Positions 42,216 to 62,900 of a stretch of DNA of 64,000 nt are shown here, in pieces (within the stretch, counting starts at the first letter, position 1; each line of letters opens with the position of its first letter). The translations under genes were made by a program, and so were the position numbers. The notes below the pieces were generated by a model, which saw only the letters and a program-made list of their open reading frames with translations, was not told the origin of the DNA and did no database searches. Where the stretch lies: assembly GCA_946965045.2 (NCBI GenBank), contig OX337242.1:310001-374000 (forward strand), in the 5' to 3' direction. The DNA is from Epithemia pelagica. Its lineage: Eukaryota > Protista > Bacillariophyta.

Positions 42216-42932
42216 CTAGGAGTAGTACTGTTTCCACCATCCATAACTGGAGGATGATTCGACCGTCCATTCGTCATCGTCGCCTTGGAGGAGGACTGGC
42301 AAGGTGGTGGGAGTGGATCGCTGTTTGCTAAAATGAGCCGCCAAGGTCATCTTTGTGTTGTTGGTGCTGCTGCTGGTGCCAGTACTCGAACTTGGTTGCA
42401 GTGTTTTGGGATCATAAACATCGCCCAAGGTGGTTTCCAACACTGGATAGGACTCGTGTCGTCGTGGTCGTTGTGGTGTGGATCGTCCCGAACGGTGGTA
42501 CTGGTGGTGGTCACTGGTGTAGCAAACATCTGCCGTTCGTACCCGACGACCTGTCGTCAGGTTGAATTTGACGGCCGTACCGGAGGAAGACGAGGCTGGT
42601 GATGCTTTGGAACCGCATCTTTCCGTAGCCTCCACCAATTCGTGATTGAGTAGAATGAGTTCAAAGGCATCGCCTCGGCTCAACACTGCCACTTCTCGCC
42701 CAAACCATTGGTGGTGATGCTTCTTGTTGTCGTCGTCGTCGTCGCTGTTGGACACGTCGTGTTGTCGTTGCGGTTTTGCTGCGGCATGTGGTTTCGGTTC
42801 GTAGTAGTAAAGTGATGGTTGCTTGTCTTGGTTTGGCAGGGCCACACGAGGGTGGTTCTTTGGTTTGGCCCTGGTGGGCAAATGATGGGGATACATGGAA
42901 GATTTACTGGCCGTGGACCATGGCATGGTCAT
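42216..42932 (-). CDS. Cluster family A protein 1 (disordered, VAVLSRGDAFELI motif)
   Basis: Open frame from ATG 42932. Motif GREVAVLSRGDAFELILLN plus YPVLETTLGDVY. Confidence 0.7.
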   Translation of the reverse strand: MTMPWSTASKSSMYPHHLPTRAKPKNHPRVALPNQDKQPSLYYYEPKPHAAAKPQRQHDVSNSDDDDDNKKHHHQWFGREVAVLSRGDAFELILLNHELVEATERCGSKASPASSSSGTAVKFNLTTGRRVRTADVCYTSDHHQYHRSGRSTPQRPRRHESYPVLETTLGDVYDPKTLQPSSSTGTSSSTNNTKMTLAAHFSKQRSTPTTLPVLLQGDDDEWTVESSSSYGWWKQYYS

Positions 42933-43062
42933 GGATTCGAACCGATCCAACAAACAAACGTGAAACCACTGCGGCAAGGAGGATGAAGTGGATTGACGAC
43001 TGCAAGAAATTGGAATTTGGAGATGAATCGTCGTGTCCAATCATCATGCTCATTCCTGGTAT

Positions 43063-43227
43063 CATCCGTTGGACTGTGCTGTACCGTGACTGTTGAGGTT
43101 CTCTATACTCTCAACGTTCCCCTTCAACGGTTCCACTCACGTGCATAGACTCAAAGTTCTTTTGGTACTAGGTAGCATGCTCATGGTGTTCACCACACGG
43201 CGGTGCGCCGCCAACCTCCAACGGATG
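43063..43227. promoter_or_regulatory. MSA-like boxes in the divergent promoter of A1/A2
   Basis: catccgttgga at 43063, ttcaacggtt at 43123, tccaacggatg at 43217. Confidence 0.6.
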
Positions 43228-43638
43228 CGAGGCACATGGTCGAGGCGTGTACTTGTGTGACAGCGCGACGAGACTTGTTGGCATCAAGTTTAGTCGCCCT
43301 TAGATCACTCTCTCATAGGGTCATCAGCGTTTTGGAGTCGCGCATTATTGCAATGGTGTGCGCGGTGGATTCCAAAATTTGGATTCTTGCAACTGCTCCC
43401 AATCGAAAAAAACCTCCAGACGTTGAGCCCATCATCGTCGTCTCCAACCGTTTGGACGACTGCTGTAGACTTAACAAAAGCAACAACAACCACAAAGGTG
43501 TGGATTCGTGGCACGGTCACATCGCGTTAAGCCCTCGGAGAAGCTATTGTGTCCTTCTGGACGGTTCCACCTCGATATTGATTGCATCGGATTGTTGGTG
43601 GTTGAGGAGACGACAAGTACCTCAGTGTCATCGACACC

Positions 43639-45282
43639 ATGGTCCGTCGGGACGACGAAAGTGACCATGCCTTGTATGTAGCACAGTCGTTTCATCATCA
43701 TCATCATCATCGTCATGAGAATGAAACTGTAACAACCCACAGGAGCAGCAGCAACAAGAAAACGACAACAACACGAAAAAAGAAGAAGAAACAGGCTCCC
43801 TCTCCCAAGCAAATGGGAAGCATTGTCATTCTTCGTCAAGGGGAAGCCTTTGAACTCGTCAAAATGTACCCCACCACTCCTCCGACGACCAATTCGAGCG
43901 GTCCAACATCAACAACAAAAACCACCAAAACCACACGACGTCCTTCCAGTCCATCTCCAAGCAATAGGCAAGGTCCACAACGATCATCATCACCAAAGGA
44001 ACAAACTCGTCGTCCCGAAACACCCAAGGATATGCTCGACTTGACGGTGACTCCCACAATGGATACACGTGTCGTTCAAAATACCATTCACCCCAAACAC
44101 GACACTTTACTACCACCATCACCATCCCTGTATGCGGCCAACGAGGCGACTAGTTTTGATACCTTTACGTTGGATGTGGACCACATGGATGAGAATGAGG
44201 ACTGGGACATGTCAACTCCCGAAATGTCGTTGGACCGCACCCGAACACCAGACCAAACCACAAGGTCCCCCACAAGCATGCCCCAAACAACACGTTCACG
44301 ATCTCCTCCATTGCCAAGAGCCGCATCTCCTCCTCCTACAACGACTCCTCGACGAGACACGAATGGAATGGAACCCACCATCCGAATGACTTCTCGATCG
44401 GCCATGCAGAAGGAACGCAACAGTCCCAGTCGAACCAACACTCCTCCTCCTACTTCTTCTTCCAACCCCTGCATCTTGCGACGCGATGCCAGTGCCAATA
44501 GTATTTTGGAAACGGCATCGTCGTCTCGACCCGAAACTCCCGTTGCACGACAACCACCACCACAACCACAACGACCTCCCCCACGGTCTCCGACCCCCTC
44601 CATTGAGTGGAACACCAGCACTGCTACTACTCCGACGACTCGTGCGATGGATCCTCCCGACAGTCGTAGTAGTCCAGAGGACGAGACGGTGGCTCCTCAA
44701 CCATCACTCCTCCTCCCCACCCGACGCATTTTCCACACGGTTCAGGCAACCACCATGCCGCCACAGAGGCAGCAGCACCAGCAGCCACCAACACAACAAC
44801 AACCACAAAAGCAGCAGCAAAAGCAGCAACCACAAAAGGAGCAACAAGAACGCGGCACTGTACCAACCACCACCACTCGTCGAGTTTCGATTCAAGACAT
44901 GGATACCAAAGTAACGCAAATTGCGACGCAGCAACAGAAAGAACACGAACACAACGAGACAGACGATGATGACGACGATGATGATGAGGATGAAAGTGAG
45001 GCCTATGATCACTTTGATCAGGGCACGCTCGGTACGGGACCCTCGGACGACGACGATGGCGATGATTCCCTCATTACCTTTATTCAGCTCGACGAAGACG
45101 AAGATGATTCCTTGGTCCCCACGATTGGTGGAAACGGCGACGACGACAAGACGATTATTCCCATTTTAAAATGTGGAGCAAGTTGTGGTGCCACCTACGA
45201 ACTGATTGGTCTGAATGAAGACACGTACGAACTGTCCTGTGGACGTGGATGGATCAAACGATCTCGAGGATGGGGCACCTAA
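43639..45282 (+). CDS. Cluster family A protein 2 (Pro/Ser/Thr-rich disordered, terminal motifs)
   Basis: 547-aa ORF. N-terminal motif GSIVILRQGEAFELVKM; C-terminal motif IIPILKCGASCGATYELIGLNEDTYELSCGRGW. Confidence 0.85.
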   Translation: MVRRDDESDHALYVAQSFHHHHHHRHENETVTTHRSSSNKKTTTTRKKKKKQAPSPKQMGSIVILRQGEAFELVKMYPTTPPTTNSSGPTSTTKTTKTTRRPSSPSPSNRQGPQRSSSPKEQTRRPETPKDMLDLTVTPTMDTRVVQNTIHPKHDTLLPPSPSLYAANEATSFDTFTLDVDHMDENEDWDMSTPEMSLDRTRTPDQTTRSPTSMPQTTRSRSPPLPRAASPPPTTTPRRDTNGMEPTIRMTSRSAMQKERNSPSRTNTPPPTSSSNPCILRRDASANSILETASSSRPETPVARQPPPQPQRPPPRSPTPSIEWNTSTATTPTTRAMDPPDSRSSPEDETVAPQPSLLLPTRRIFHTVQATTMPPQRQQHQQPPTQQQPQKQQQKQQPQKEQQERGTVPTTTTRRVSIQDMDTKVTQIATQQQKEHEHNETDDDDDDDDEDESEAYDHFDQGTLGTGPSDDDDGDDSLITFIQLDEDEDDSLVPTIGGNGDDDKTIIPILKCGASCGATYELIGLNEDTYELSCGRGWIKRSRGWGT

Positions 45283-45451
45283 GAAAGAATGAATGAATAA
45301 ATGAGGCTACCCGATACCCAAGAACCGACATTCAATGTATATGATGATTCTAAGATAAGCGTTTGAAACAGCAGTGTTCTGTTTGCCCCAACAAGAATGG
45401 ATCCTCGTCGTCCTCTAGGGTCTCTACTCTAGGAGCATAACTGCAAAAGAC

Positions 45452-45649
45452 CCGTTGCTGCGGTTTCTGGGGTTCTGGTCGTCCAGTCGCTTAGCGACTG
45501 AAGCATTGCGTGCTGCGCGTGACGGACAAGTTCCCATAGATTTATGGTGACTTTCGCCGTATCCGTTGGACAGGACGCGATCGCAAAAAGGCAACGTTTC
45601 AACGGATCCATGGCCATAAATATTACTATAGCCGAGGATGTCAACGGAC
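45452..45649. promoter_or_regulatory. Four MSA-like boxes upstream of A3
   Basis: CCGTTG at 45452 and 45563; CAACGG at 45600 and 45642. Confidence 0.6.
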
Positions 45650-45896
45650 CAAAACGTTACAAGTTTCCCCATATAGATGAGGCTGGGAACGTTGGAAGAC
45701 AAAAAGTCTAAGAAAAGGACTGGCAACAAGGACAACCCGGCAGAGGAAGACCACAGAGATCGAGAGGTTCTTTATTCGTGGGCTTGAAGGGAGGAAACGA
45801 GGGGCCAATATAACAGATCAACATTTAAAGAACAGGGACCATCAATCAACACTTTTGAAATACGCAGTTGGATCTCTCTCTCTTTGGCACGAGACA

Positions 45897-47465
45897 ATGA
45901 CGGATGGAACGATTGCAACGTTCACTCCTACTGTATCCAAGCCAACGATGATACGATCCTTTCGCGACGACTCGTCGACGAGTGGATGGAGTTCGTCGGT
46001 CAAGACGGTGGCGTTGAAAAAGACGGAGTCGGGTCGGATTGTCATTTTGAGTCGAGGGGATACCTTTGAGCTGGTCAAACTCATTCCCGATTGGACTGAC
46101 AATGAAGACAATCAATCGGTGGTCAGTCGAGTCCCACAGGCTACCTTTTCCAGTGACAATAGTACCGTTGCGTCCATGATTATGAGTGAATCAATTACCA
46201 GACGAGCAAGGACCAAGCAACCCATTCGGTCCCCTGCCGATGCCAAGGTTGCAAAGCCAACGGTGTCGTTCAAAGATCCTCCCGACACGACATGGCATGT
46301 ACCAGCAACAATACCCGAGATGGAAAGCGTGGATGGCAGTGGATTCATGGAAGATGACATTGTACGAAAACACAGCTTTTCGGATGTGCGACTAAAAGAA
46401 GAAGAGGAGGAGGAAGATGACGACGAGGAGCACATCGACCACATTCACCAGGATGATTGGGATGCCAATGGCAGTGAAGAAGATGATAAGTATACAGTCA
46501 CTGAAGAAGAATCCAACCAGGAGGATGAAAAGAGAGACGACGTTACAAGGACATCGGCCTATGATGACGACAATACCAGAATAACTGCAGATGATGACGA
46601 TGATGATGATATCACAAGATATTCCATTGATGATCAAGTGGGAGGATCCAACACAGCGGTACGGCTCATTGTACGAAAACACAGCTTTTCGGATGTGCGA
46701 CTAGAAGAAGAAGAGGAGGGGGATGACGACGAGGAGCACGTCTACCACATTCACCAGGATGATTGGGATGCCAATGGCAGTGAAGAAGATGATAAGTATA
46801 CAGTCACTGAAGAAGAATCCAACCAGGAGGATGAAAAGAGAGACGACGTTACAAGGACATCGGCCTATGATGACGACAATACCAGAATAACTGCAGATGA
46901 TGACGATGATGATGATATCACAAGATATTCCATTGATGATCAAGTGGGAGGATCCAACACAGCGGTACGGCTCATTGTACGAAAACACAGCTTTTCGGAT
47001 GTGCGACTAGAAGAAGAAGAGGAGGGGGATGACGACGAGGAGCACATCGACCACATTCACCAGGATGATTGGGATGCCAATGGCAGTGAAGAAGATGATA
47101 AGTATACAGTCACTGAAGAAGAATCCAACCAGGAGGATGAAAAGAGAGACGACGTTACAAGGACATCGGCCTATGATGACGACAATACCAGAATAACTGC
47201 AGATGATGACGATGATGATGATATCACAAGATATTCCATTGATGATCAAGTGGGAGGATCCAACACAGCGGTACGGCTCAATCATCATACACGAAAGAAG
47301 GAGCAACAACGACATCAGGATGATGAGACTACAATGAACAGTGCCGTCGTTCCCTTTGTCCATTTTGGATCCGGGTTTGGCACAATGTATGAGCTCGTAC
47401 AGGTAAATGTGGACACACTGGAATTCTTTTGGGGAAGAGGTTGGGTAACGTACGACGCACCATAG
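45897..47465 (+). CDS. Cluster family A protein 3 (highly acidic, with a triplicated 102-aa block)
   Basis: ATG at 45897. N-terminal motif GRIVILSRGDTFELVKL; C-terminal motif VVPFVHFGSGFGTMYELVQVNVDTLEFFWGRGW. Confidence 0.85.
   Translation: MTDGTIATFTPTVSKPTMIRSFRDDSSTSGWSSSVKTVALKKTESGRIVILSRGDTFELVKLIPDWTDNEDNQSVVSRVPQATFSSDNSTVASMIMSESITRRARTKQPIRSPADAKVAKPTVSFKDPPDTTWHVPATIPEMESVDGSGFMEDDIVRKHSFSDVRLKEEEEEEDDDEEHIDHIHQDDWDANGSEEDDKYTVTEEESNQEDEKRDDVTRTSAYDDDNTRITADDDDDDDITRYSIDDQVGGSNTAVRLIVRKHSFSDVRLEEEEEGDDDEEHVYHIHQDDWDANGSEEDDKYTVTEEESNQEDEKRDDVTRTSAYDDDNTRITADDDDDDDITRYSIDDQVGGSNTAVRLIVRKHSFSDVRLEEEEEGDDDEEHIDHIHQDDWDANGSEEDDKYTVTEEESNQEDEKRDDVTRTSAYDDDNTRITADDDDDDDITRYSIDDQVGGSNTAVRLNHHTRKKEQQRHQDDETTMNSAVVPFVHFGSGFGTMYELVQVNVDTLEFFWGRGWVTYDAP
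46359..47279 (+). repeat. Coding tandem repeat, 3 copies (309, 306, 306 bp), near-identical
   Basis: attgtacgaaaacacagc starts at 46359, 46668 and 46974. Confidence 0.97.
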
Positions 47466-47790
47466 TGGCTGCGACAAATCCACCAAAAGGGAAGGGGATG
47501 GGGGTGATCCATCATGTAGCTAGCAAATACTCGCGCTTCAAATTTTGTAAATTTGTTGTACTTGGAATGAAAGGCATTCCATTAGCAGTCATTCTATCTC
47601 TTTAGAGCACCCTTTGCGATCAAATAATGTTCAACTCCCATGGTCTCCGAAGCAACAGAACTACGGATAGCCTTCCAAGTCACACATTTTTCCTGGTCTT
47701 TTTGGCTGCACCTAGTCTAGCATCGGACAGAGAAAAGAGAGGGTAGGTTATAGAACATGACCCATTAGATAACGACTTAGAGAAGGTATC

Positions 47791-48024
47791 CATCCGTTGA
47801 GCACGTCCGGAGGGTTTTGTTACCTACCCCCAAGCAGGGGTGAGTCCAGTCCCGCGTGTCTGAAAGCACGACATGTGAGTAAGAGAATGTACCTTTAGGT
47901 ACGACTTATGTGCGACCTGGACTCACCCCTGCTTGGGGGTATTTTGTTACCGCAATCGCGCACATCCTGGACCATGTCCAAACATGCGGCAACAAATGGA
48001 CTTAACAACAATCAGTCCGTTGGA
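47791..48024. promoter_or_regulatory. Two MSA-like boxes upstream of A4, flanking the MITE
   Basis: catccgttga at 47791 and gtccgttgga at 48015. Confidence 0.55.
47825..47941. mobile_element. 117-bp MITE with perfect 25-bp TIRs and a 10-bp target-site duplication
   Basis: TIR tacccccaagcaggggtgagtccag (47825-47849) and its exact reverse complement (47917-47941). ttttgttacc is duplicated at 47815-47824 and 47942-47951. Confidence 0.92.
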
Positions 48025-48163
48025 TGCAAGTGTTGTTGTTATAGCACGAAGGAATAATCGGCTGTCTTTTGCAAGTCATGGAAGGTTCTGTTGAACAAAG
48101 AAACGTCTTGTCAGTTTGCTCCTCCAAGGTCTTGTTGGACCATTGCTGGAAACCATCCGCACC

Positions 48164-49342
48164 ATGGTAGTTCCAAGTCACTCGTCGTTTCGCGCCTCAT
48201 CCTCTCGGCAATCGTCGTCGTCTTGGATGACGGGTCGTCGAGAATGGCATCCTTCGACCGATTGGTATCCCACCCGCACTAGTGACCCGAGTTTGGTCGA
48301 ACAAGATGCCATTGCGGTCGGTTTGCTTCGTCACACGGCAGAGGAGGACGAAGCCGATTGGTATCCCATCGCCAATTCGTCACCCGAAGAACGATATCGT
48401 TCCACGACCATCCTCCAAGAAGAAGAAGAAGAGGAGGCGGATCATCAAAACTGGTCCTCGACCTCCTCCGCCAACGCAAGTCATTCCGGAACGAATGCTG
48501 TCAGCAAGCATCGTCGACACAAACCGCAACCAACGAACAATGACACTAACCAAGATGAGGATGAAGACCGAAATGTCCCGGACGAAACAGAACGCGACAC
48601 TCGTACACCAGACAAGACAACGCAAGACACGAGAACCACCACGAGGAATCATCCGACGAAATCAAGGGACACAGACAGAGACCGTGTCCTGAAAGAAGAA
48701 GAACAAGACGAGCAACAAGAAGAAGAACAGGATATGCGAGAGGACGATGATCAATCGCTCCATTTACGATCGGTAGCACTCGTGGCGCCAGATTCCGAGA
48801 CGTATGCGCTCATTCGAGTCAATACCAGCACGAAAGAAAAGGTTCAAAAGTGGAAGCGACGGCAACAAGAAAGGGGTTCGTTCATGTCCGGTAGTAGTAA
48901 TAGCAGCACGGTCGAAGAAAACGACTCTGGGGACCAGCCGCCGCAGCCGTACATGCAGGACAGTGCATCGCATTCCTCGTCCAAATGCGGGGTGACCACC
49001 AGGAAGAGTCGAGACGACTACTCGTGCAGTCACTACACGGACGCAGGAACCTGCAGTTCCCAATCCTGGACCAATCTCCAGCGCATGCAACGGTCCAGTT
49101 CGCTCCCTCTGTTCCGGTCGGTCCCACAACCCCAAAGCGGCAGCAGCAACAGCAACAAGAGTCACCCAAATCCTTTCGGTGGTTCGTCCATGACGAGGAG
49201 AACGTCTTCAAACCAAAGTGCCCCCTCCCGCAGTCGTACCGGAAAGAGCCTCGGCGGTCCAGCAAAATCCAAAGATCGCACTCTACCACTACGCAAGGGA
49301 AGAAGTCTGGGTGACTTCCTTTCGAAAAAGACTCTTCGGTGA
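48164..49342 (+). CDS. Cluster family A protein 4 (disordered, one degenerate motif)
   Basis: Open frame from ATG 48164. RSVALVAPDSETYALIRVNTST resembles the family-A C-terminal motif. Confidence 0.75.
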   Translation: MVVPSHSSFRASSSRQSSSSWMTGRREWHPSTDWYPTRTSDPSLVEQDAIAVGLLRHTAEEDEADWYPIANSSPEERYRSTTILQEEEEEEADHQNWSSTSSANASHSGTNAVSKHRRHKPQPTNNDTNQDEDEDRNVPDETERDTRTPDKTTQDTRTTTRNHPTKSRDTDRDRVLKEEEQDEQQEEEQDMREDDDQSLHLRSVALVAPDSETYALIRVNTSTKEKVQKWKRRQQERGSFMSGSSNSSTVEENDSGDQPPQPYMQDSASHSSSKCGVTTRKSRDDYSCSHYTDAGTCSSQSWTNLQRMQRSSSLPLFRSVPQPQSGSSNSNKSHPNPFGGSSMTRRTSSNQSAPSRSRTGKSLGGPAKSKDRTLPLRKGRSLGDFLSKKTLR

Positions 49343-49345
49343 TTG

Positions 49346-49869
49346 GTCCGTTGATTCATTGTGCTTCTTGATGCTATATGGTATTTATATTAGTAGGAGT
49401 ATATCGTTGATTGGGTTATAGGAGTAGTTTTGCGCAAGCATTGTCTTTATTAGAGAGCGACTACGGAAAGGGATCGTTTTCTTTTGTGTCCGTCGAATAG
49501 GTAGCATACCTAGAGTTTCTAGCACTCCGTCTGTAGGATGTCGAAAATTCGCAGCGAACTGACTGTCTGCGACTGACTGACTGTTGTGGGTGTCTATGCG
49601 AGCTCGCCGCGCACCCACAACGCATCCAACCGCCAATGGCGCACAGTTCGTCTAACTGAGCCTCTATGTAGGCAAACGTTTGGAAGATGGGGACAATACG
49701 CAAACGTACCATGGACTTAGCAGGACGATGGCGCACTGATAAGAAAGAGGGAGGAATCGGTGGTGTGGAAAAGAGAGTAGTTGTTGGATGGCCACTCTCG
49801 GTATCGTCGTTCAACCTCCGGAAACGATTGCCGGATTGTAATATTGCTTGGCGCTTGGCATCCGTTGGA
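49346..49869. promoter_or_regulatory. MSA-like boxes upstream of B1
   Basis: gtccgttga at 49346 and catccgttgga at 49859. Confidence 0.55.
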
Positions 49870-49960
49870 TTATTTTTACCATCTTCACCTCCCACCGCAA
49901 CGACCAGAATAACAACTTCTACCGTGCCATTCTCTTGTTGTAAAATTTGGAGGTTGGACC

Positions 49961-52253
49961 ATGCCCGGTCGATCAAGTGGGAAAACCTCCAAGGGGAGTG
50001 GACGCTTCTCCATTGGTGGAAGACGGAATAGGAACAAAAATAAGAAGGAACGCAATGAAGCCGTCATTATGATCGATGGCGGTGCCTATCGCAAGCCACC
50101 ACCACCACCACCACTACGAACCCCCACCACCACCTACAGTGATGTCGACGAATCTTCCTTTGTCCTAATGGAAGATCAAGAGTATCTAAGAGACGAAACG
50201 ACAACTCCGTTTGAGCAAGAACATGAAGAAGAAGAAGAAGAAGAAGAATGGACCGCCGCAACACCGTTTGTCATGGACCGATTACCCTCCACCAAACCAG
50301 CAACCATGGGTGGCAAACGGTACCACCACCACCCAGCCGAGGTACCACCACAACGCCAGGCTCTGGACCCGTACGACGAAGAAGAAGAAGACGAAGAGGA
50401 TGTCACGTATGCACTCGAAGAAGAGGTGCTAACCCAACTCTTGGAGGAAACAGTCCTGACCGAACCACCACCCTCAATACTGCCGGAAGAAGAAGAAGAA
50501 GAACTAGACGAAGAAGAGATGGAGGAGCTGGTGAAACACACGCACGACGCCGATTCGGCCATTTTTTCCAATACCTTATCCAAACTCACGGACGATGCTC
50601 AGTCTGCGGCACCCTCAGTCGATACGACTGTATTTTCTCAAACAATTTGGCAGTTTGAGTTCGTCCGAATTCATAGCCAAGGATGCTCTCAAGGATTTTT
50701 TGTTGGTGGGAGCAGGATCCAAGCGCAGTCGTCGATCGGCCTCTCCTGTAAACCGACCAGCTTCACCACACAAACAACCACCGCAGTCCAACTATCCGCC
50801 TGCTACTACTTCACATGAACGAGACGACCTGGAGACAGTCGAAGGTAGGATGGAGCCGTCCAGACGAGCATTTCCACCCAGCCAGGAACCCCCACTTCAA
50901 CAAGAGGAGAATGATGAGGAACAAACCAATCTTTCCATGGATGAATATTCCAACTCTCTCGTGGAAAAGAAGAGGAAGCGGATGACTTCACGGAACGACC
51001 CGAGGCCACGATCGTTACTTCGGTGGTCGAATCCTATGCACCACCCCCACGACCCTCCACGCAACAACAAGCACCACAGTGGAATCGCAAGACCACCAAG
51101 AAACTACCCAAAAAGGGCAAACTCGGCAAGGGCCGATCGTCCATGGGAGGTCGTCGGCCCATACCGGCCGCTCTTCCTGCGATTCGAGAAGACGATGCCA
51201 TTTCCGAAGGGGCAGAATCTTACTCGCAAGCGTCTTCGGGCACCTCGTCTCAGTCCAAGGGAGCCATTTTATATGCTGTCAGTGTCCCACAACGAAAAAA
51301 GAAGCCGAGCTTTCTCGGTCGAGCCTTTCGTCGGAACTGACCAGCGTCCCTGGATGAAGAGGACGACTATTACAATGACGATGAAACACGCGACTATTCT
51401 GTGGAGGACCAAGAAACGCGCCTGTCTTCCGTGGTGCCAACATCCAAACCAGTGCGAGGCCACCCACCCACCATGGCGCATCGTAGAGAAAAGCCGCAGC
51501 AACCGATGCAACGTGGTTACAACAACGAGAATAATAAGACTCCTGGAGCCAGGCTATCATCATCGGCGGTGGGGAAATCACCACGTCGGTACGATGATCC
51601 CAGCTTTTTGGATGTAGAGGATGAGATTGCGACACTGGATAGTGGTGCCCTGGAAGAAACATCCGTGACCGAACTACTATCCAAGATTGACGCAGATTTG
51701 AACTCACTTTCTCTCTTGACGTCGTCTCATCATCTAAAGGGTGACGATGAGTACTCCGAGTCTTTGAAATCGTCTCAGTTGGATTATGATGATGAAGATG
51801 ACGACGATGATGATTCTCGAAAACCCATGAAGGTTCCTTCGTTTGTGCATCCGACCGATATAGAGTCGGCATTGGGAGACATATCCCTTAGTGCATCGCG
51901 ATCCAGTGTCTCGCAAGAATCCGAAACCACAAGAGAAACAGGTGTCAGCGATAAAGATTCCATGACCACCTTTTCCAAAGTTTGCCGATGGCGCCTCCAT
52001 GGGCACCACCACGTTGGCAGGTGACGACGATGATTCGAGTGGCGACAACAATATCAAAATGATGCAAGATACCTTCTTTGATACGGCTGTATTTTTTGGT
52101 TTGAAAAAAGAAAAACCAACACCCGAAGACGATGACTTTAGTCAAATAACACCCGTCAACTTTGGCTATTTCGGAAGCGCCTTGAAAGATTCTGCACTCT
52201 CAGTATTTGCTCCATCGGCGAAGAAGAAAAAGAGCCAAGGCCATGCAAACTAG
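49961..52253 (+). pseudogene. Cluster family B member 1, interrupted by three 1-bp frameshifts and one in-frame TGA
   Basis: Coding-like sequence runs through ORFs 49961, 50595, 51023, 51401 and 51999. Shifts occur at homopolymers near 50635, 50967 and 51978, with a TGA at 51338-51340. It ends in the family-B motif QDTFFDTAVFFG...DDFSQITPVNFGYFGSALKDSA. Confidence 0.75.
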
Positions 52254-52493
52254 TGTTTAATCGAATATAATTTATGTTAACTGTGTATATATGCATCCAT
52301 TTCTCTTAAGCGTCACATTGTGTCGAAAAACATCCTGAAAGAACGACTGGGTGTGGTTAAGGACAATAGGATCCTCTAGCCTATTGAAATACATAGCATA
52401 GGTAGTCTTTGATGAAATAATAGGTGTACTCCTAGGAGTAGTTAGATAGAATAGAGGAAGGTAGCAAAAGATACCCTCTGAAGTACGAAGATG

Positions 52494-52565
52494 CATCCGT
52501 TGAGCATGGGATGTCACCGATATCAACTTTGGGCAACACTTTTGCATCGAGCATCCCAATAACGG
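52494..52565. promoter_or_regulatory. MSA-like boxes upstream of B2
   Basis: catccgttga at 52494 and taacgg at 52560. Confidence 0.5.
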
Positions 52566-52951
52566 TAGAATGGCAGTTGAATGGATTGATGCCACATAGA
52601 ACCAAAAACCAGACATCCCCCAACGTACGAGGGATATTAGACCATAGCGGTCCGTTTATTTCTTTGCCGTACACAGCGCACCCAATTCTGACACTCGTGA
52701 GAGTATGGCTTCTATCTATGATGCTATCTACGAATGTCTTGTGCGGCTCTTGCAGAAATGTCGATGAGTGACAGCCAAGCCGTTCCGGGATGCACCGAAT
52801 TTAAGAATTGCCATGAAAGAGTTGTGACGGTTGAGCTGCGTCAAGGAATTTTTCATTCACCCAAACGCTTTTGCACCACAAAGAATAGACCCATTTGTCG
52901 TGTCGTCTCATTCCTGAAAGCATATTCACAGTCACCAAGGGCAACATTTCC

Positions 52952-54409
52952 ATGAGGGTTGAGCGACGAAACCAGAAGGCATCCGACGATGCGACCATGA
53001 TTGTGGACCCCACTGCGTCCTTGAGCTTTTCGGGAGCTGCTCCGGCTACAATGAAGCGTTCGAGCTTGTCAAGGAAGCGGCAACAAGTTCCACTTCGTCG
53101 ACTGGACACGAGAAGAGGTCCCTCTGCCATGGCAGGATCAGCGAGGACTGCACAGCAGCCAACAAGAAGAAAGGCAGGCAAGGGTCGCTGGAGACGAAAT
53201 GTTGTCAAGAATGTATCACAACGACACATTCCAAGTCTTCCTGTGGTTCATGAAGAGGAGAGTATGCCCGAGCTGCCGATTGAAACAACACCGGAACTGC
53301 CTAGAGCGACTCTTGCTGTTATAAAAGCCGCTCCATGGAGTGAAACTTCCTCCTCCTCCAAGTCGTTTGTCGAAAATACAATCGAAGGTGTCATGAAAGA
53401 AACGAACAATGCCATCACGTATATCAATACCGATGCCCAAAAGGATCTTTCTTCGAATTTCAATGCGGTGAGTGCCTCACTCTCGGATTCCTTTGGATAC
53501 ATTGAGAGTTATGTGATGAAGCCTCCCTCTCTCCGATCTACCGCCGGGGAAAAGTCCAACCAACAAGGTTCGTTTGACGTCATTGCCCGTCTACGAGAGG
53601 AGTCCAGGCTCGAAGATGAAGCCATGATGAAAACACAACGAGAATCAAGAGATGAGAACAGGGACTCGTCGGATGATATTATCGCCCCAATCACTTTTGC
53701 ATCGGATGCGCAAGATTATTTCCCGGAAGAAACAGAGGAAGAGACAGAAACCCATGACCACAACCAGGAACGAGACGCTGCTCCAGATCTTGAAGAGTCC
53801 GTTGATGACGAAAGGAATGAGGAATCTACAGAAAACGAGGCAACCGATATAATTCCTGTCGGTGAGATGCTCCGTATCCATGACTCTAGTTCGGATGTGG
53901 AGATTATTGCGAGTTTTATCAATGCCCAAGTCTCTCAGTCCCATGTGGAAGTTGTCATGAACTGGACCCATTCTGGACTTGAATCAGTTTCAAGTGCTTT
54001 GAGCAGCTTTGGCAAGTCCCAACTCGACTCATCCTCTCATGACATGGCAGAAGACTCAGACGATGAGGATTCGGTGGCATCGGAGGAACCCATTGTTGTC
54101 ATTCCGACCGACACTACAGAAACCGAGTTGGTGCTCAACAAGAGTTCGGAGGAACCCATTGTTGTCATTCCAACCGGCACTACACAAACCGAGTTGGTGC
54201 TCAACAAGAGTTTGTCCAACGACGAACAAAGTTCCACATCTCAAGACAGAATGGACTTTTCTTTTCAAGACACGTGGACGAAGACTGCCGAGATTATGGG
54301 CTTGAGTTCTCCACATGACACGAGCTCGGATCTCAACCATGCCGCCTTGATGAATCCACTTGCTCTTATAAGGCAAGCCAGGACTGAAGAAGATTCCCAA
54401 GGACAATAG
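52952..54409 (+). CDS. Cluster family B member 2 (basic N-terminus, acidic disordered body)
   Basis: Open frame from ATG 52952. KAGKGR...IPSLPVVHEEE resembles B1 KLGKGR...IPAALPAIREDD. C-terminal QDTWTKTAEIMGL. Confidence 0.8.
   Translation: MRVERRNQKASDDATMIVDPTASLSFSGAAPATMKRSSLSRKRQQVPLRRLDTRRGPSAMAGSARTAQQPTRRKAGKGRWRRNVVKNVSQRHIPSLPVVHEEESMPELPIETTPELPRATLAVIKAAPWSETSSSSKSFVENTIEGVMKETNNAITYINTDAQKDLSSNFNAVSASLSDSFGYIESYVMKPPSLRSTAGEKSNQQGSFDVIARLREESRLEDEAMMKTQRESRDENRDSSDDIIAPITFASDAQDYFPEETEEETETHDHNQERDAAPDLEESVDDERNEESTENEATDIIPVGEMLRIHDSSSDVEIIASFINAQVSQSHVEVVMNWTHSGLESVSSALSSFGKSQLDSSSHDMAEDSDDEDSVASEEPIVVIPTDTTETELVLNKSSEEPIVVIPTGTTQTELVLNKSLSNDEQSSTSQDRMDFSFQDTWTKTAEIMGLSSPHDTSSDLNHAALMNPLALIRQARTEEDSQGQ
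54080..54211 (+). repeat. Coding tandem repeat, 2 x 66 bp (SEEPIVVIPTxTTxTELVLNKS)
   Basis: Units start at 54080 and 54146. Confidence 0.93.
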
Positions 54410-54841
54410 TCCAAAGTCATTCAATGCTCTTAATGAGTGACAAAGTTCCCACGTCAAAGGTAACCTTCGTGTCCATCCTCGGCACAATTCGTATATGTCC
54501 TATCTTTGGATCTACTTGTGTTTTGTTCATAATATGATAAATTCCTCTCATTTTGCCCATTCTATTCCATAGAGACTCCATGATAACTCTACCCGTCTGA
54601 TTATTTCATTCGCACAAGCGACCACCAGAACGGAACCAAATCTCAAAGCAGTCGCACTGTCTGTCACAGAGATCTATGCCCTTCTCGTTAGCGATTGCAC
54701 AATTCCTTATGCCCCATGGCAGACGCATGTCAAAAATGGCCCGGATAAGTGAATGGGCTTCCGTCTGAAATACGTTGACTCCCTACCAATCTTTGTTGTT
54801 ACTTATGAAGTTAAATGTGTTCATTGTCTAACTCTTCTTTG

Positions 54842-54927
54842 TCAACGGACAACATTGTCGTATGTCCACGTCTCAGACGACAACATTCATAAGTAAATCC
54901 GACCGTTGACCGAGAGGAGCCAACGGA
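54842..54927. promoter_or_regulatory. Three MSA-like boxes upstream of B3
   Basis: CAACGG at 54843, CCGTTG at 54903, CAACGG at 54921. Confidence 0.55.
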
Positions 54928-54954
54928 AAAGGACATCCGGCCAGCAGGCCTATT

Positions 54955-57900
54955 ATGACCATGCTCATTATTTCATTTTTGTTGAGCATCCATCACGTGT
55001 CCGCCTTCTTCTTTTATGCACATGATTCATTCTGCAATCTTGTAGTGTCAAACTCAGAAACGCATTCACATTGGAGGCCACAAAGAAGCTTTGGAGAAAA
55101 AATGGAGCGCTCTCGTTCGAGAGAAAATGATGATGGTATGGAGTCCAGTGCAGAAGAAGTCGTAAGCACTCATTCCATGAAAGGATTCTTCCTCGATTAT
55201 CATGCAAGATCGGCTGAGGAAAACCACTCCCCAGAAGAAGACAGGTTTGTGGAGCATTCAAAGGAGAGGGAAAGTTCTGATGAACGAGATGAGCCACTTG
55301 TGGAAGATCAACAAGACTCTAGTTTGGCCGAGAATTTGGAGCTGAACCAGTCAAGGGGTAGCGAGCAGCAAGACTGCGAGGTACAACACAACGATGACCT
55401 CTCATCGCAGTCGCAAGATTCTCCTTTTACAAATGAAGAGCAAGGAGACACAACCGAAACGGGGGACCAAGACATCCAAGAGGACAACGATGGACAAATC
55501 ACTAGTACGCCGAGCAAAGCAGGCAACGACGAATCCAAGACACAGGAATTGGTACAAGTCGACTCTTTGAACACTACATCTAGCTCTACATCTATTCGAC
55601 GTGTTGTGGGTTTGACTGGTCGAATCCGAAGTTTCTTGAAGGGAGGAAAGCATGAAAAGCTAGATTCCAAGGTATCGACTACAGCAACCCGACAAGATTC
55701 GAACCCAATGGACAAAACGGTTGCACGCACAGACATGCTAGACGTTCCGGTACAAGAGAGCAGCGTCCCATCCAACGAACTGGAAAAAGTTGCAACAGAA
55801 GAGGATCTCACAAAGTTGATTGAGCAAATCAAAGGGTTTATCGATTCAATCGGTATTTTCATGAAAACCCGTCTTTCTCAAGAAGTGACGGCGATGATGC
55901 ATCAGTCAGAAATTCAAGGGCCTTCGACATCGGATGTAACTTCGGTGGCCAATGATGTTGCGGGTTGGATGAAGGACAACATCCAGCGCTCATCCATTCA
56001 GGCATCTTGGTGTCAAGGGGACAATATCAAATCCATGACACAAGGCTTTGGTTGTGGTTCAAACGACAGTGAGAAGGACTCCATGGCTCATGGTTTAGTT
56101 TGTGGCCCAAATTACAACGCAAATGAGTTACACAAATCTCCTGATTTGGATCTACTACTCAATCGATTCTACGACGCAGTTGGTGTTATGGAAGCATCCG
56201 TGGATGTCATTGTTAAAATGCCGGGGAGGGTCACGAATGATATCCAGAAAACATGGAACGAATGGAGTGCCCAGCTTTCGTGGATCCGAACCGAGGCGGA
56301 AACGAAACAATGGGCAGCAATTGAAGGCGGTCAGGATTTTACAGAGGAGCTGTTGAAGCATCCTCTTCCAGTCCTCCATGTGGATCAAGCTGTGGAAGGC
56401 GAACCAAAGGATGCAACCGATGGTGTCCAGAAGACAGATGTTTCGCCTAGAGGAAAAGATTCTTCATGTTCCTCATTGGCAAGCAATGCATGCTCAACAA
56501 AAGCTTCTTCTTCTGTGAAACGGGCACCACCGAAGAAGAACAAGCCACACAAAAGCAAGGAAGAACAGCCACGTAGTCGTTCTTCTGGGTCTTCGAAACG
56601 CCTTTTCCGTTTCAGTTTTGCGAAGAGCAAGCGAAAGACACAAGACCCCTCGTCGGTATCGGGCAGTACGAAGGATCAGAAACAAGAGGACGAGGCAGGC
56701 TTACCAGTGGACAACAGTAACAACACTGTCGCTAAGGCGTCCAAGCCCGTAGAGAGCGCGTCTGGGGAGAGAACTATCCAAGAAGAGGACCTTGAGAAGC
56801 GGTCTCACATTGATTCACATGTCAAATCGACTCCAAAGCACCAAGCAGATCAAGAAGACGACACGGTCACAGATGGAAAACTCAATAAGACATGCTTGAA
56901 TACTTGCATGCCGGACGAACAAGAACCTTTGTGCTGTGCTCCTTTTGCTTGTGGTAACAATGCCGAGCTGGAAACTACGGACCAAGACGATATCTCAATC
57001 ACTTTCACCACGGGGGATGTGGCAACTGAGGCCCCCTCCTTGGCGGATGCCAAACCCACCAACATCACTGAGAACCCACAAGTCGAAAGCACCGTACAAG
57101 ACAACGAAGAATCAATGGAGGATCGCGTGGAAAGTGGTTCCACAAAAGCTAAATCTGTCAGTGCCGTAAGGTCATTTTTCTCGTTTTGGAGTGTAGCCGA
57201 GCCAGAAAAGAATCATGATAAAGAGATTCCAGAGTCTCAGGAAGAGGCTTCTCTCCAAGCGGATCTTGTCAAAGAACCAAATGTCACCACTACCACAACG
57301 GATCAGGTGGAGAATTCATCGACGCAAGAGCAGGCAGAAACTTCATCTAACGACGGAGTCCATGATATCAAAGAAAATGGAAGTCAAGACAAGAATGTAA
57401 GCGATGTAGACCAACAGGACGACATGTTGTGTGCACCATTCGTATGTTGTAATACCGAGCCTGAACCCGTTGACGAGGAAGACAACATTGTGAGTCCCAG
57501 TACTCCAACGTCCCAGCTAGAATTTGAAGAAACAACTACTGTGACCGAGCCTTCTAAAGTCAGCAACATTCCGACAGAGAAAGAATCGATCAAGGACCAC
57601 CTAGAAGATACGAATGGAAACCCTCCATTAGAAAAGACAAAACGCAGCAAGGGCGGGAAACGCGGAAAAAGCTTCTCCAAGGGAATGCACTCTATATTTT
57701 CTCGGTCTCATAGATCAGGCAAAGTCCGGAAAACCAAGAAAGCTATTCCAGTTGAGAATCTAGATGACCGAGGAAATCCCAGCGCAATTGAAAAGGAGGG
57801 CGCAGACTCCAAATCAGCTAGCACAACAACCGCTGCCAATGCTTTGGTTGATCCATCTAATGTGAAGAAGTCGTCTGACAACCGTAGTTGGGGTAAGCCA

Positions 57901-59298
57901 TCCCAAGGGACAACGAACACTTCGAATGAGAAAGGTACAACTGTGGATGCTGTCGAGCAAAGTGCGGAGAAAGCCACAAAAGATATGGAAGTGGAACATT
58001 CCAATGCAGTGACCATGTCGGAAATCAACAGCCTATCCATTGAGGAACACCCAGCCGATGAAACAACAGAAAATGCCAAAGCTGTGCTTCTCAGGAATGA
58101 CCTTTCTCCTGACACGGAAGAAGGAAACAAAAGTGAGGCAATGAATCAGCAGACGATTATCCCGCCAACATTCCAAGGCGAACCACAGCCATCCGAAAAC
58201 AATACAACAAAAATGGCGGAAGACACGGCGGATTCCTCCAGTAAACGAAGCTCTTCCAAGTCGAAAAAGAGAGGCTTCCAATTCCGAGTGAAAAAGTCTT
58301 TAGTGGAACCTGTTGTTATGGGCACGGAAGAAATTGAAACAAAACGTGGCGTAGCAAAGTTCGCAGGTTCTCTCAAGGCCAAGACCATGAATTCAATCTC
58401 AAGCAAGAACTTTGGTCCATTATCTAGAAAGAAGAAACATGAACAGAAAGAGAAATCGGACGATACCGTCACGACAACCCAAAATACAGCCGTCACCGAG
58501 AAGGATGCTCTACAAGTCATTGTACCAAGTGGGCGTTCGACCATGGGTCAGGGTTCCAAGGTTGAAACTGAGAAGACCAGCCGACTCGGGGCTTTGGCTC
58601 AAGGAACGGAGCGTTCAGTCCAAGGAATGGTTGACAAAGACGAAAAGGTCACGACGGATTCTCAAACTTCACACATGGCTCCACCTGAAACAGTGAGAAG
58701 TACCTCGAGAGGATCCGACTCCCGTGGCGAGAAGAAAAGAATCCAGTTTGTAGATCAACTAGAGGAATTCGACGATCAGGGGATCGAAAGGGTTCTCTCG
58801 TCTACCGTTGATACATTAAGGTATGAATCGAAGGAAGGAAAAGACAAGCAATCCGTTACACCATCGACAACAAAGAACAATGAGCGATCCGAAAAACTAG
58901 ATGAAACCAAACAGGAAATGACCGAAGATGACAAAGGAATTGAGCTGACAGTTAGCAAGAGCGCGTGGGATGGACCGTCGTTTGTCCCACTCAACCAGGC
59001 ATCAATGGAATCGGAAGGTTCAGACGGAGGTGATGACGATCCATTGTTGCCGAGACCCGAGTCGTATGACACGGGAGATTCCCGATCGCAGCATACCAAT
59101 ATTCTCACTGATACCTGGCAAACAGCGACCGAGTTGATGTGCTCACGACAAGGCGAAGCGGACGTGGACGACTCGAGTGAAGTCACTCCGGTGGATGCCG
59201 CATTCTTTGACAAGGCACTGGCGGCTACCACAAAATCGTGGATGCCCTGGGGCAAAAAGAAAGTCCCCAAGAAACTAACATTTGTCGGATTGCCCTAA
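54955..59298 (+). CDS. Cluster family B member 3, ~1400-aa acidic disordered protein
   Basis: Uninterrupted 4.3-kb ORF with uncertain start (ATG 54955 or 55102, or a small upstream exon 54862-54892). C-terminal DTWQTATELMC...DDSSEVTPVDAAFFDKAL. Confidence 0.85.
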   Translation: MTMLIISFLLSIHHVSAFFFYAHDSFCNLVVSNSETHSHWRPQRSFGEKMERSRSRENDDGMESSAEEVVSTHSMKGFFLDYHARSAEENHSPEEDRFVEHSKERESSDERDEPLVEDQQDSSLAENLELNQSRGSEQQDCEVQHNDDLSSQSQDSPFTNEEQGDTTETGDQDIQEDNDGQITSTPSKAGNDESKTQELVQVDSLNTTSSSTSIRRVVGLTGRIRSFLKGGKHEKLDSKVSTTATRQDSNPMDKTVARTDMLDVPVQESSVPSNELEKVATEEDLTKLIEQIKGFIDSIGIFMKTRLSQEVTAMMHQSEIQGPSTSDVTSVANDVAGWMKDNIQRSSIQASWCQGDNIKSMTQGFGCGSNDSEKDSMAHGLVCGPNYNANELHKSPDLDLLLNRFYDAVGVMEASVDVIVKMPGRVTNDIQKTWNEWSAQLSWIRTEAETKQWAAIEGGQDFTEELLKHPLPVLHVDQAVEGEPKDATDGVQKTDVSPRGKDSSCSSLASNACSTKASSSVKRAPPKKNKPHKSKEEQPRSRSSGSSKRLFRFSFAKSKRKTQDPSSVSGSTKDQKQEDEAGLPVDNSNNTVAKASKPVESASGERTIQEEDLEKRSHIDSHVKSTPKHQADQEDDTVTDGKLNKTCLNTCMPDEQEPLCCAPFACGNNAELETTDQDDISITFTTGDVATEAPSLADAKPTNITENPQVESTVQDNEESMEDRVESGSTKAKSVSAVRSFFSFWSVAEPEKNHDKEIPESQEEASLQADLVKEPNVTTTTTDQVENSSTQEQAETSSNDGVHDIKENGSQDKNVSDVDQQDDMLCAPFVCCNTEPEPVDEEDNIVSPSTPTSQLEFEETTTVTEPSKVSNIPTEKESIKDHLEDTNGNPPLEKTKRSKGGKRGKSFSKGMHSIFSRSHRSGKVRKTKKAIPVENLDDRGNPSAIEKEGADSKSASTTTAANALVDPSNVKKSSDNRSWGKPSQGTTNTSNEKGTTVDAVEQSAEKATKDMEVEHSNAVTMSEINSLSIEEHPADETTENAKAVLLRNDLSPDTEEGNKSEAMNQQTIIPPTFQGEPQPSENNTTKMAEDTADSSSKRSSSKSKKRGFQFRVKKSLVEPVVMGTEEIETKRGVAKFAGSLKAKTMNSISSKNFGPLSRKKKHEQKEKSDDTVTTTQNTAVTEKDALQVIVPSGRSTMGQGSKVETEKTSRLGALAQGTERSVQGMVDKDEKVTTDSQTSHMAPPETVRSTSRGSDSRGEKKRIQFVDQLEEFDDQGIERVLSSTVDTLRYESKEGKDKQSVTPSTTKNNERSEKLDETKQEMTEDDKGIELTVSKSAWDGPSFVPLNQASMESEGSDGGDDDPLLPRPESYDTGDSRSQHTNILTDTWQTATELMCSRQGEADVDDSSEVTPVDAAFFDKALAATTKSWMPWGKKKVPKKLTFVGLP

Positions 59299-59978: not shown

Positions 59979-62900
59979 ATGATGCGACGACGTTGGTTCG
60001 TAAAGAATCGACAGGCGGTCAAGGAGGAGAAGAAAGTGGAAACATCCATTAACCCAGCCGCCTCCTTTGAGTTGGTCAATAAATCAAACCGACGTAAGGA
60101 CAAGAAAAACAAATCATCCACAGCTCGTGCGGTGGAGGCACCATCGAAAGAGCAACCACAGTCTCAGGAACAGCGAGATGAAATCAGTGGTAGTGCCGAC
60201 CGAGAACCAAGCAAAGTACCTGAGCGAGACAAAGCTCCCTTGAAAACGCATGCAGATTTTTTTCTTCACTCCATGTCCCTCGAAGAAGAGGAACTGGCCA
60301 AGACTCTCGGAAACAAGAACACAGTGAATGTATCCAGAGCCTCCTCCTCCAACAGATGTGCTTCACCGGAACCAACCACCACGTCTCATGCGGACTTTAT
60401 CCTTTCGACGCTCTCGCAAGAACAGGAACAACAAGCTCTTGTTGCCGTACTATCGGCCGTGGAAGCACTCAAAGCCAAGTCCCAAGATGCAGTGTCCAAT
60501 TTGGCACAAATTGTATCTGCCATTGACAGCATTGAAGAGTCACCCGACTCCTCCGATGGACGAGCCATGGTCTCTGTGCTCCCCAAGTCGGATGCTCCCT
60601 CCATTCCCAACTATGTGGAGGCAGACGAAGACGGGGATGACGATATTGTCTCCAACGAGAACAACACTCTTACTTATCAATCCATGACTGCGGGAGAGCG
60701 CCTGACACGATTCGCAGGATGCATGGTTCCCATGGCCTTAGTCGGTGGGTGTGCTGGAGATGAATTGAAGACCACCGAGTCGGTCGATGCCGAAATTGCC
60801 GCGGCAACAAAGGCACAGAAAAAGACCAAGGACAAAAAGAAGGTACATGGAAAAGCAAAACGTGAAGACAAATCAGAACCACCCAAAGCGCCTCTGGACA
60901 AGTTGGTGGATACTATGGAAGATCAAATCAAGGGTGTGTTTGGAGAATCGGGGGAACTCGGGAACCGACCAAGACATGCCAAGAGTAGTGCTGTACAAGG
61001 CTCTCCGTCCGGCAGCACTGCTCCAGAAAGCGACGTGGAAGAGGAAGCGGCGCCTTCTGTTCCTGCACAAGAAGAAGAACAGGGCATGTCGGATGACTCG
61101 GTCACTGAGCTTGAAACGCCAGCAGCTCCGGTGGCCATATCGACCACTGAAGCCAAAGCCATGGAGGATATGATTCGAGCCCAGCGGGAAATGGGTCTAG
61201 GTTCTAGAATGCGCCTGGAAGTAGTCAAAGAGGAGGAAGAAAAACAGCTGCTCGAAATGAAGACGACATCCAAGTCGGAAGATATGACGGTATCGTTTGA
61301 TTCGTTGTCGAAATCGAATTCTCGGACCGTTGTCAGGTCCATGACCAAAGACTCCTTGAACGCTATTGACGAACATGCCGAGCAGGAGGATGATCAGGCA
61401 AAGGAGCAGAAATTAGAGACTGTCGACGAACTTGTATCACAGACCGGAAAGAAAAACAAGAAGGCCGCTGACTCATCCAAGAAAAGTAAGAGAGGCAACC
61501 GGTTGTTTAAAGGAGGAGGAAAACCGTGGAAGACTAAAATGCAATTCTCGTCCAAAGCCAAAAATATGGACGCCGCTGTGGACACTGAATCAGATGCTGA
61601 AGTCAACCAACCAAAGCCTGAAGAAAAGACACCGGAACCATCCGTGCAAGAACAAATGTTGCCTCCCCATCCTCCTCAAGCCAAGAAAAACATACTGGAC
61701 GAGAAGAAATCACAGATTGAAACTGATCATTCGCTGGAAGAATTGCCAACTACGGAGAGTACCGTTTCTGTTGAATCAATCGTTGAGAAACTCAAGCTAT
61801 ACAATGAAGCTAATCGATCCGGCTCATTGGACGAAACGGATGGCTTCTTGAAAAAATTGGAATCGGACAAGGCGACTTCCCGAAAGGAGGCAAGCCCGAA
61901 CACGCGAGGTCACGAAGAAGGCCGTCTGGCGGAGACCCAATCGGGATCCACCGACTCTTATGATATGAATCCTATCCCAAAAGACACCCCAACGTCTCAG
62001 CCCTCACCCGTCGAAAACAAGGAGGTTATTGGCGGAGTAGTCGATGAGTCGGGTACCGCGGAAAAAGCAAGAAAAGAAGGCAGAGGAAGGAAAAAGAAAA
62101 GTCGTACCGCAGTCGATGGTAAACCTCCGAGACCTGCGCGACGGGCCACCGGAGAGAAGAATCTCAATCCCGTTATCGTGTCCAGCACTTCCAGAGATTC
62201 CGATAGTGCATTCTCCAACAAATCCGCGAGGTCGAAAAATTCGGATGCAGGTTCGAAAACCAAAAAGAAGACTCGACGAAACAACTCAATGGACACAGCG
62301 TCTTCGAAATCGTCTCAGAGCTCGTCCGATTCAATCGCTAAACATCAGGACAAGCAACAAGAAGAACCTCCTCTATCTGTCGGCGCAGACTCACCAGCAA
62401 CGGTAGAACCGTCGGACCGAAAGACGAAGCGCCGGTTTGCTGGTGGAAAACGTTCCGAACAAACTCAAGAGAAAGGAGGCCGTCGTCGATTGAAAGGCTT
62501 TCTACGATCCGCCGTGGGACAAAAGTCGAACAATAACAATACTCAAACCATTGACAATGCCTCGGGACCCGCCAACCACAGCAACGAAATGAACCTGGAT
62601 GACAAAACTGGTTCCAAGGCTGCAGAGAACACCCGCAGTGCTTCTCCGGTCGAAGATGTCCCTCAAAAGACCTCATCAGCTGCGAATGACAGTGAAAGTG
62701 ACTGTTTTAGTGGTGTCGTCTCATCTGAAGAAGATGATAAAGACATTGTCCCAGACGCCGATACGAATCAACTAGTGTTATCAGTAAAACAAGTGAGATC
62801 GTCAGCGATTGAAATCACCACTGCCGATTCGATGGACTCAGAGCTAGCGTCAGCGTTGCTGGAACAATCATCGTCCCGACTGACGGAAGTATCTTCCATG

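Follow-up and report, generated by a model that had tools for sequence, protein, structure and literature searches.

A cluster of Myb-type CAACGGA boxes in the spacers of an orphan gene array of the diatom Epithemia pelagica

What is a short, recurrent DNA word doing between the genes of an orphan array in a diatom genome, and what kind of factor might read it? We addressed this question in a stretch of 64,000 nucleotides from Epithemia pelagica (GenBank assembly GCA_946965045.2, contig OX337242.1, positions 310,001 to 374,000 of the forward strand), hereafter the window, within which positions are numbered from the first letter. An initial annotation had singled out the hexamer CAACGG and its complement CCGTTG in the spacers of a gene cluster between about 43 and 55 kb, likened it to the MSA (mitosis-specific activator) element of plants and proposed that a diatom Myb regulon is physically clustered here. 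We found that the enrichment of this box in the cluster spacers is real. We consider it moderately probable that the boxes form a homotypic cluster of Myb sites that would co-regulate a tandemly duplicated array, the sites having been retained or turned over while the spacers otherwise diverged.

We defined spacers as the DNA between long open reading frames (ORFs), resulting in seven spacers of 4533 bp in all, slightly less than the ~4.7 kb first estimated. Across both strands of the window there are 48 exact matches to CAACGG. The spacers contain 15 of them, each an exact match at the position originally listed, and 12 of the 15 extend to CAACGGA (Table 1). By spacer, the CAACGG counts are 3 (43041-43638), 4 (45283-45854), 2 (47466-48115), 2 (49343-49960), 1 (52025-52894), 3 (54410-54954) and 0 (59299-59978). 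Box-bearing spacers thus hold one to four sites each, and the distance from a site to the downstream ATG ranges from 34 to 613 bp. The last spacer, which had been described as box-free, indeed lacks CAACGG and holds just two one-mismatch CAACGAA sites.

When the spacer sites were oriented, their logo read Y-CAACGG-A-Y, with information close to zero beyond these 9 positions. At position -1, 14 of the 15 sites have a pyrimidine (C in 6, T in 8); A stands at +1 in 12 sites and a pyrimidine at +2 in 14, while position +3 has no preference for A; the conservation of the flanks noted at the outset therefore holds, as does the threefold presence of the 11-mer TCCAACGGATG (sites 43066, 43219 and 49862). 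The core pentamer AACGG is contained in all 15 sites, all of which also satisfy the generic type-I Myb sequence YAACGG, and a C precedes 15 of the 20 AACGG pentamers in the spacers. The sites divide into nine minus-strand and six plus-strand copies, which suggests a DNA-level site working in either orientation and argues against a polyadenylation or RNA signal.

To assess the enrichment, we compared these counts with several backgrounds. Markov models of order 1 and order 2 fitted to the spacers gave 2.1-2.5 expected CAACGG (close to the ~2 hexamers first expected) and 0.6-0.9 expected CAACGGA, against 15 and 12 observed; the maxima over 400 Markov simulations were 9 and 5. In an unbiased k-mer scan that took the remainder of the window as background, CAACGGA ranked first of ~8000 7-mers (12 observed vs 0.57 expected, Poisson P = 1.4 × 10−12), and the top 6-mers were CAACGG and AACGGA. 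Restricting the background to non-ORF DNA gave 12 CAACGGA in 3.8 kb vs 1 in 16.8 kb (Fisher P = 1.8 × 10−8). In the k-mer comparison against this non-ORF background, in which words of the cell cycle genes homology region (CHR)/CPP, E2F and CCAAT types were sought, no second word came near CAACGGA. Five further hexamers at 43-55 kb fall inside ORFs, where their density in the cluster (0.6 per kb) equals background.

The excess would be unremarkable if other intergenic DNA held CAACGG as often, and this is not what we found: ~23 kb of neighbouring non-ORF DNA contained 2 CAACGGA and 11 CAACGG, so that the spacers are ~30-fold and ~7-fold richer, respectively. We also walked ~48 kb beyond the window along a second haplotype. 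At 35-60 kb rightward in that haplotype, 6.2 kb of non-ORF DNA held 2 CAACGG (0.32 per kb) and 1 CAACGGA (0.16 per kb). In the right-hand continuation of the array, with genes of the same general kind, non-ORF DNA has CAACGG at an intermediate density of 1.3 per kb, and most of these sites lack the A at +1. At one place in this continuation (L003:15164-15176), two boxes form a perfect palindrome, CAACGG-G-CCGTTG, ~300 bp upstream of an ORF of 181 aa.

The spacers are linked by no family of direct or inverted repeats, and no other similarity between one spacer and another was found. The only repeats seen were runs of acidic codons in genes, the three 306-bp repeats of gene A2 and a single small foldback. 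Three other identities of the boxes were ruled out: dispersed repeat or transposon fragments, by the absence of information beyond 9 bp and of any repeat family across the spacers; copies of a duplicated promoter, by the dissimilarity of the spacers in all other respects; and non-coding RNAs or transfer RNAs (tRNAs), by the lack of Rfam or tRNA matches.

The box-rich zone comprises seven genes, namely four of family A, gene 5 and two of family B. Family A genes have only short terminal motifs in common, and family B genes a C-terminal DTW signature; the cluster proteins are acidic, rich in Ser and Thr, and apparently disordered. No Pfam family was found in 10 cluster ORFs or in 10 further neighbouring ORFs. 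The sole match of the 485-aa B1 protein among 5.8 billion proteins was its own 98% allele, and the 547-aa A1 protein yielded two weak C-terminal matches only among 1.84 billion representatives. An Atlas feature search with gene A1 was uninformative (best score 0.69).

Outside the locus, the only detectable relatives of family A lie on two contigs, L005 (Logan SRR25945676) and L004 (JGI 3300045427). P0118, a divergent protein of 280 aa with both the N- and the C-terminal family A motifs, is encoded on L005, a 1.9-kb contig from another run without nucleotide similarity to the window; used as a query, it matched only itself. P0117 (214 aa) has the C-terminal motif only and lies on a 974-bp contig with 14 bp of upstream sequence. 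Given these two proteins, family A must occur in one or more further samples or environmental diatoms. On L005, three CAACGG boxes, one of which reads TCAACGGAC, stand 150-185 bp upstream of the P0118 ATG (~0.2 expected), so the association of the box with family A holds outside the locus.

The array could also be compared with a second haplotype or strain (ENA assembly ERZ21939226, contig ctg1353l), which is 93-98% identical to the window in aligned blocks. It has the same array, with 14 CAACGG and 11 CAACGGA in 4.35 kb of non-ORF DNA, and 11 of the 12 CAACGGA cores are identical base for base. The twelfth (47794) sits in a 489-bp stretch that the second haplotype lacks; the weak site at 45452 is gone, and one CAACGGC site is gained at L001:9713. 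Among aligned spacer positions 4.0% differ between the haplotypes, and the shared CAACGGA cores have 0 changes in 77 bases (P ~0.04).

The 489-bp stretch (47496-47984) is also missing from the contigs of all four runs that hold the region, which join 47495 to 47985. It carries a small foldback resembling a miniature inverted-repeat transposable element (47825-47941), whose perfect terminal inverted repeats of 25 nt are separated by 67 nt; in three runs the contig word depth over this element is 10-40x that of its neighbours, so it is multi-copy. The four runs are Logan assembler contigs of unknown library type, and three of them resemble genome assemblies, their contigs reaching 0.5 Mb. In run X4, gene bodies are covered while depth is about zero in three spacers, which hints at RNA but is no proof of it.

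The boxes might have no regulatory role at all and instead be remnants of a promoter duplicated in an ancestor, the product of some mutational quirk or a cluster arisen by chance, and we regard this as very improbable. The genes are tandem paralogues, and the haplotypes show turnover of sites (one lost, one within an indel, one extra), both of which would suit such an origin, as would the lack of a significant difference in conservation between the boxes and the flanking DNA. However, P values of 10−8 to 10−12 survive correction for ~8000 7-mers, and the apparently unrelated families A and B and the unlinked L005 homologue all carry the box. Because the spacers share nothing else, neutral inheritance would have erased a 9-bp box too.

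If the box is a functional cis-regulatory element, as we propose for YCAACGGAY, its sequence points to a Myb-family factor. CAACGG is the classical type-I site of animal c-Myb and B-Myb, and the extended c-Myb consensus YAACKGHH would fit the A-Y flank of the box. Animal B-Myb reaches G2/M promoters largely via MuvB at CHR elements; the boxes here are perfect type-I sites, yet no CHR-like or other second k-mer is enriched alongside them. The plant MSA consensus is YCYAACGGYY(A) and is bound by R1R2R3-Myb factors (among them NtmybA1/A2/B and Arabidopsis MYB3R1/4). The MSA core is AACGG, bound by MYB3R factors, and TCCAACGGT has served as a MYB3R bait (PMC9730800). In diatoms, Myb3R factors are encoded (PMC11563040; bioRxiv 10.64898/2026.03.25.714157) and Myb3R1/2 have been proposed to act in proliferation (PMC11563040), and 3R-Mybs are ancient and expanded in stramenopiles (PMC8854648). 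The box does not fit bZIP (ACGT), HSF (GAAnnTTC), E2F, CHR/CPP or CCAAT cores.

The likeness to the MSA element, which the initial annotation had stressed, stands in part. The AACGG core is shared, the best copies (TCCAACGG) have the TCC 5' flank of the bait, and, as in plant promoters, several copies occur per promoter in either orientation near the gene start (here measured from the ATG). Of the flanks, the C before AACGG fits Y and the pyrimidine at +2 also fits, whereas +1 is A where the MSA element has Y, -1 is Y where it has C, and +3 is without its A; the consensus flanks as a whole are therefore not matched. The targets differ as well, being orphan disordered proteins in a diatom here and cyclin B, CDKB, kinesin and KNOLLE for the MSA element.

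These comparisons bear on whether MYB3R factors bind the boxes as genuine MSA elements, the cluster being a mitotic G2/M regulon, which we judge unlikely. Besides the core, the 5' flank and the several copies in both orientations, the proposed role of diatom Myb3R1/2 in proliferation speaks for it, as does the enrichment of M-phase genes among predicted Myb targets in Cylindrotheca closterium (bioRxiv 10.64898/2026.03.25.714157). Against it, +1 is A in 12 of 15 sites. None of the cluster genes belongs to a known mitotic type (cyclin B, CDKB, CDC20, kinesins, cytokinesis genes): they have no Pfam family and no informative homologues, and counts of [ST]P, [ST]Px[KR], KEN, D-box and RVxF in the cluster proteins are not above those in control proteins of the window. 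G2/M timing is thus unsupported, given an A rather than a Y at +1 and targets without mitotic signatures. A programme linked to cell division more broadly, either mitotic G2/M or meiosis and gametogenesis, would probably still be the setting in which the boxes act.

A sexual-stage Myb programme suits the box no less well than a mitotic one. Reproductive proteins are typically encoded by genes that evolve fast, are confined to one lineage and have been duplicated in tandem. The cluster genes have these properties, with two weak homologues in 1.84 billion representatives, and this is in keeping with a sexual-stage Myb cascade (meiosis or gametogenesis, of Myb3R5 or Myb2R2 type) in which the orphans would be sex-induced and silent in vegetative cells. 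In the one diatom studied, C. closterium, expression during meiosis and gametogenesis is predicted from Myb motifs in promoters of 500 bp, and Myb3R5 is gamete-specific across diatoms (bioRxiv 10.64898/2026.03.25.714157). If X4 is RNA, however, the cluster genes are expressed in ordinary culture, and we hold the sexual-stage cascade to be rather unlikely. The C. closterium motifs (Bilcke et al.), compared here by description only, resemble the box in being diatom, Myb-type and promoter-proximal, with Myb3R paralogues as the proposed regulators; they differ in coming from machine learning on expression, whereas ours is a dense homotypic cluster found from sequence in a Rhopalodiales-related lineage.

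The box could also be a real cis-element of a non-Myb factor, such as a C2H2 zinc finger or a protein specific to the lineage. Just 9 bp are informative and, unlike the MSA element, the box has A at +1, which would leave room for such a factor. Nevertheless, CAACGG is a textbook type-I Myb site, the other cores are unmatched and no second k-mer is co-enriched, making a non-Myb reader quite unlikely in our estimate.

We return to the homotypic Myb-site cluster. The box would most likely be read by a Myb-family factor with an R2R3 DNA-binding domain, 3R-Myb being the leading candidate, and Myb binding may coordinate the expression of seven adjacent genes. As these genes make up two families, duplicated in tandem, that encode orphan acidic disordered proteins, transcription of the array is probably co-regulated as a single block, the genes being switched on together. 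Histone-type tandem arrays offer a parallel, in that neighbouring paralogues each keep one short box while the spacers diverge; unlike in those arrays, two apparently unrelated families encoding proteins without known function have the same box here. The clustered regulon first proposed is accordingly borne out as a short cis-element in adjacent spacers, while the clustering itself is largely accounted for by tandem duplication of two paralogue families.

Several points weigh against a Myb-read regulon. Counted over the full 9-bp boxes, the haplotypes differ by 3 substitutions in 122 positions vs the 4.0% background (P = 0.28), and allelic conservation of the boxes is only marginal and weakly supportive. 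No Myb domain (Pfam) is present among 38 ORFs tested over ~100 kb, nor any recognisable mitotic gene. The family B gene at 59979-63203 has no box, and the box at 49348 lies 6 bp past a stop codon and 613 bp before the next ATG. A site of 6-9 bp could, moreover, belong to another factor family, such as the C2H2 zinc fingers.

Table 1. Boxes and genes of the array, with positions in the window. Box rows give the hexamer itself.
Feature	Position	Strand	Remarks
Box TCCAACGGAT, CAACGGA type	43066..43071	-	Divergent spacer A0(-)/A1(+); identical in second haplotype
Box TTCAACGGTT, non-A type	43125..43130	+	Other haplotype: +1 T>C
Box TCCAACGGAT	43219..43224	+	
Box GCAACGGG, weak, non-consensus flanks	45452..45457	-	Lost in other haplotype
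Box TCCAACGGAT	45563..45568	-	
Box TTCAACGGAT	45600..45605	+	
Box GTCAACGGAC	45642..45647	+	
Box CTCAACGGAT	47794..47799	-	Within 489-bp stretch 47496-47984 absent from other haplotype
Box TCCAACGGAC	48017..48022	-	ATG at 48164 lies 147 bp on
Box ATCAACGGAC	49348..49353	-	6 bp past gene A3 stop
Box TCCAACGGAT	49862..49867	-	ATG at 49961 lies 99 bp on
Box CTCAACGGAT	52497..52502	-	ATG at 52952 lies 455 bp on
Box GTCAACGGAC	54843..54848	+	ATG at 54955 lies 112 bp on
Box GTCAACGGTC, non-A type	54903..54908	-	
Box GCCAACGGAA	54921..54926	+	ATG at 54955 lies 34 bp on
Two more CAACGG boxes, 63696 (-) and 63912 (+)	63696..63917		Precede next + strand gene, which starts just beyond window end
Gene A0, family A orphan, ILSRGDxFEL-type motif	42216..43040	-	Divergent from A1
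Gene A1, 547-aa family A disordered protein	43639..45282	+	
Gene A2, family A, 3 x 306-bp internal tandem repeats	45855..47465	+	
Gene A3, family A-like disordered protein	48116..49342	+	
Gene 5, acidic disordered protein	49961..52024	+	Three overlapping frames in this haplotype
Gene B1, 485-504 aa, C-terminal DTW signature	52895..54409	+	
Gene B2, 1447-aa disordered protein, DTW signature	54955..59298	+	
Gene B3, 1074 aa, family B	59979..63203	+	Upstream spacer (59299-59978) box-free

Two of the cluster genes differ in structure between the haplotypes. The repeats of gene A2 (46397-47308) are 92-100% identical, each encoding an acidic unit of ~102 aa, and the protein has 316 aa in the other haplotype vs 536 aa here, so the repeat number is polymorphic. 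Gene 5 (49961-52024) consists of three overlapping ORFs in different frames, while in the other haplotype a single ORF of 508 aa spans most of this stretch; indels seen in the runs are +14 nt at 50628, -4 at 50802, -2 at 50807, +G at 50966 and -1 at 51977. The frame breaks could reflect a frameshifted allele, introns or assembly errors.

In the wider neighbourhood, window positions 40292-64000 together with L001-L008 (~70 kb) form an unusually long run of ORFs without a Pfam family, ~20 ORFs of 150-1447 aa that lie mostly on the plus strand; the first recognisable domain rightward is a sulfotransferase (L008:11934-13193). One window protein carries DUF6824, its nearest Atlas clusters being Bacillariophyta. 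The closest named sequence to the CAF1A protein of the window is from Epithemia clementina (60% identity). The ORF of this CAF-1 subunit A gene (14252-18535, minus strand) has 1427 aa vs 1268 aa in the database models of both haplotypes, so the gene must depart from the ORF in its real start or by an intron.

[quoted passage not shown] The box cluster is a well-defined Myb-type site cluster of an already known sort; what is new is its shifted 3' flank and its unusual set of targets. A more far-reaching proposal, which we offer as a doubtful possibility, is that YCAACGGAY is the site of one diatom Myb3R paralogue and marks a lineage-specific regulon of fast-evolving disordered proteins in physical arrays. 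This locus, with the weaker box-bearing DxW-family genes to its right, would be one of these arrays, and cell division or gametogenesis would be the time at which the regulon is turned on as a block. If true, a diatom Myb would for the first time have a cis-element defined by sequence, together with a set of targets, and there would be a way into a large class of diatom orphan genes. With six adjacent promoters, twelve near-identical boxes and genes without known function, the locus is a compact and very clean test case. It makes testable which diatom Myb reads the site, what clustered orphan disordered proteins do, and whether the link between 3R-Myb factors and cell division known from plants and animals extends to stramenopiles with a shifted flank preference.

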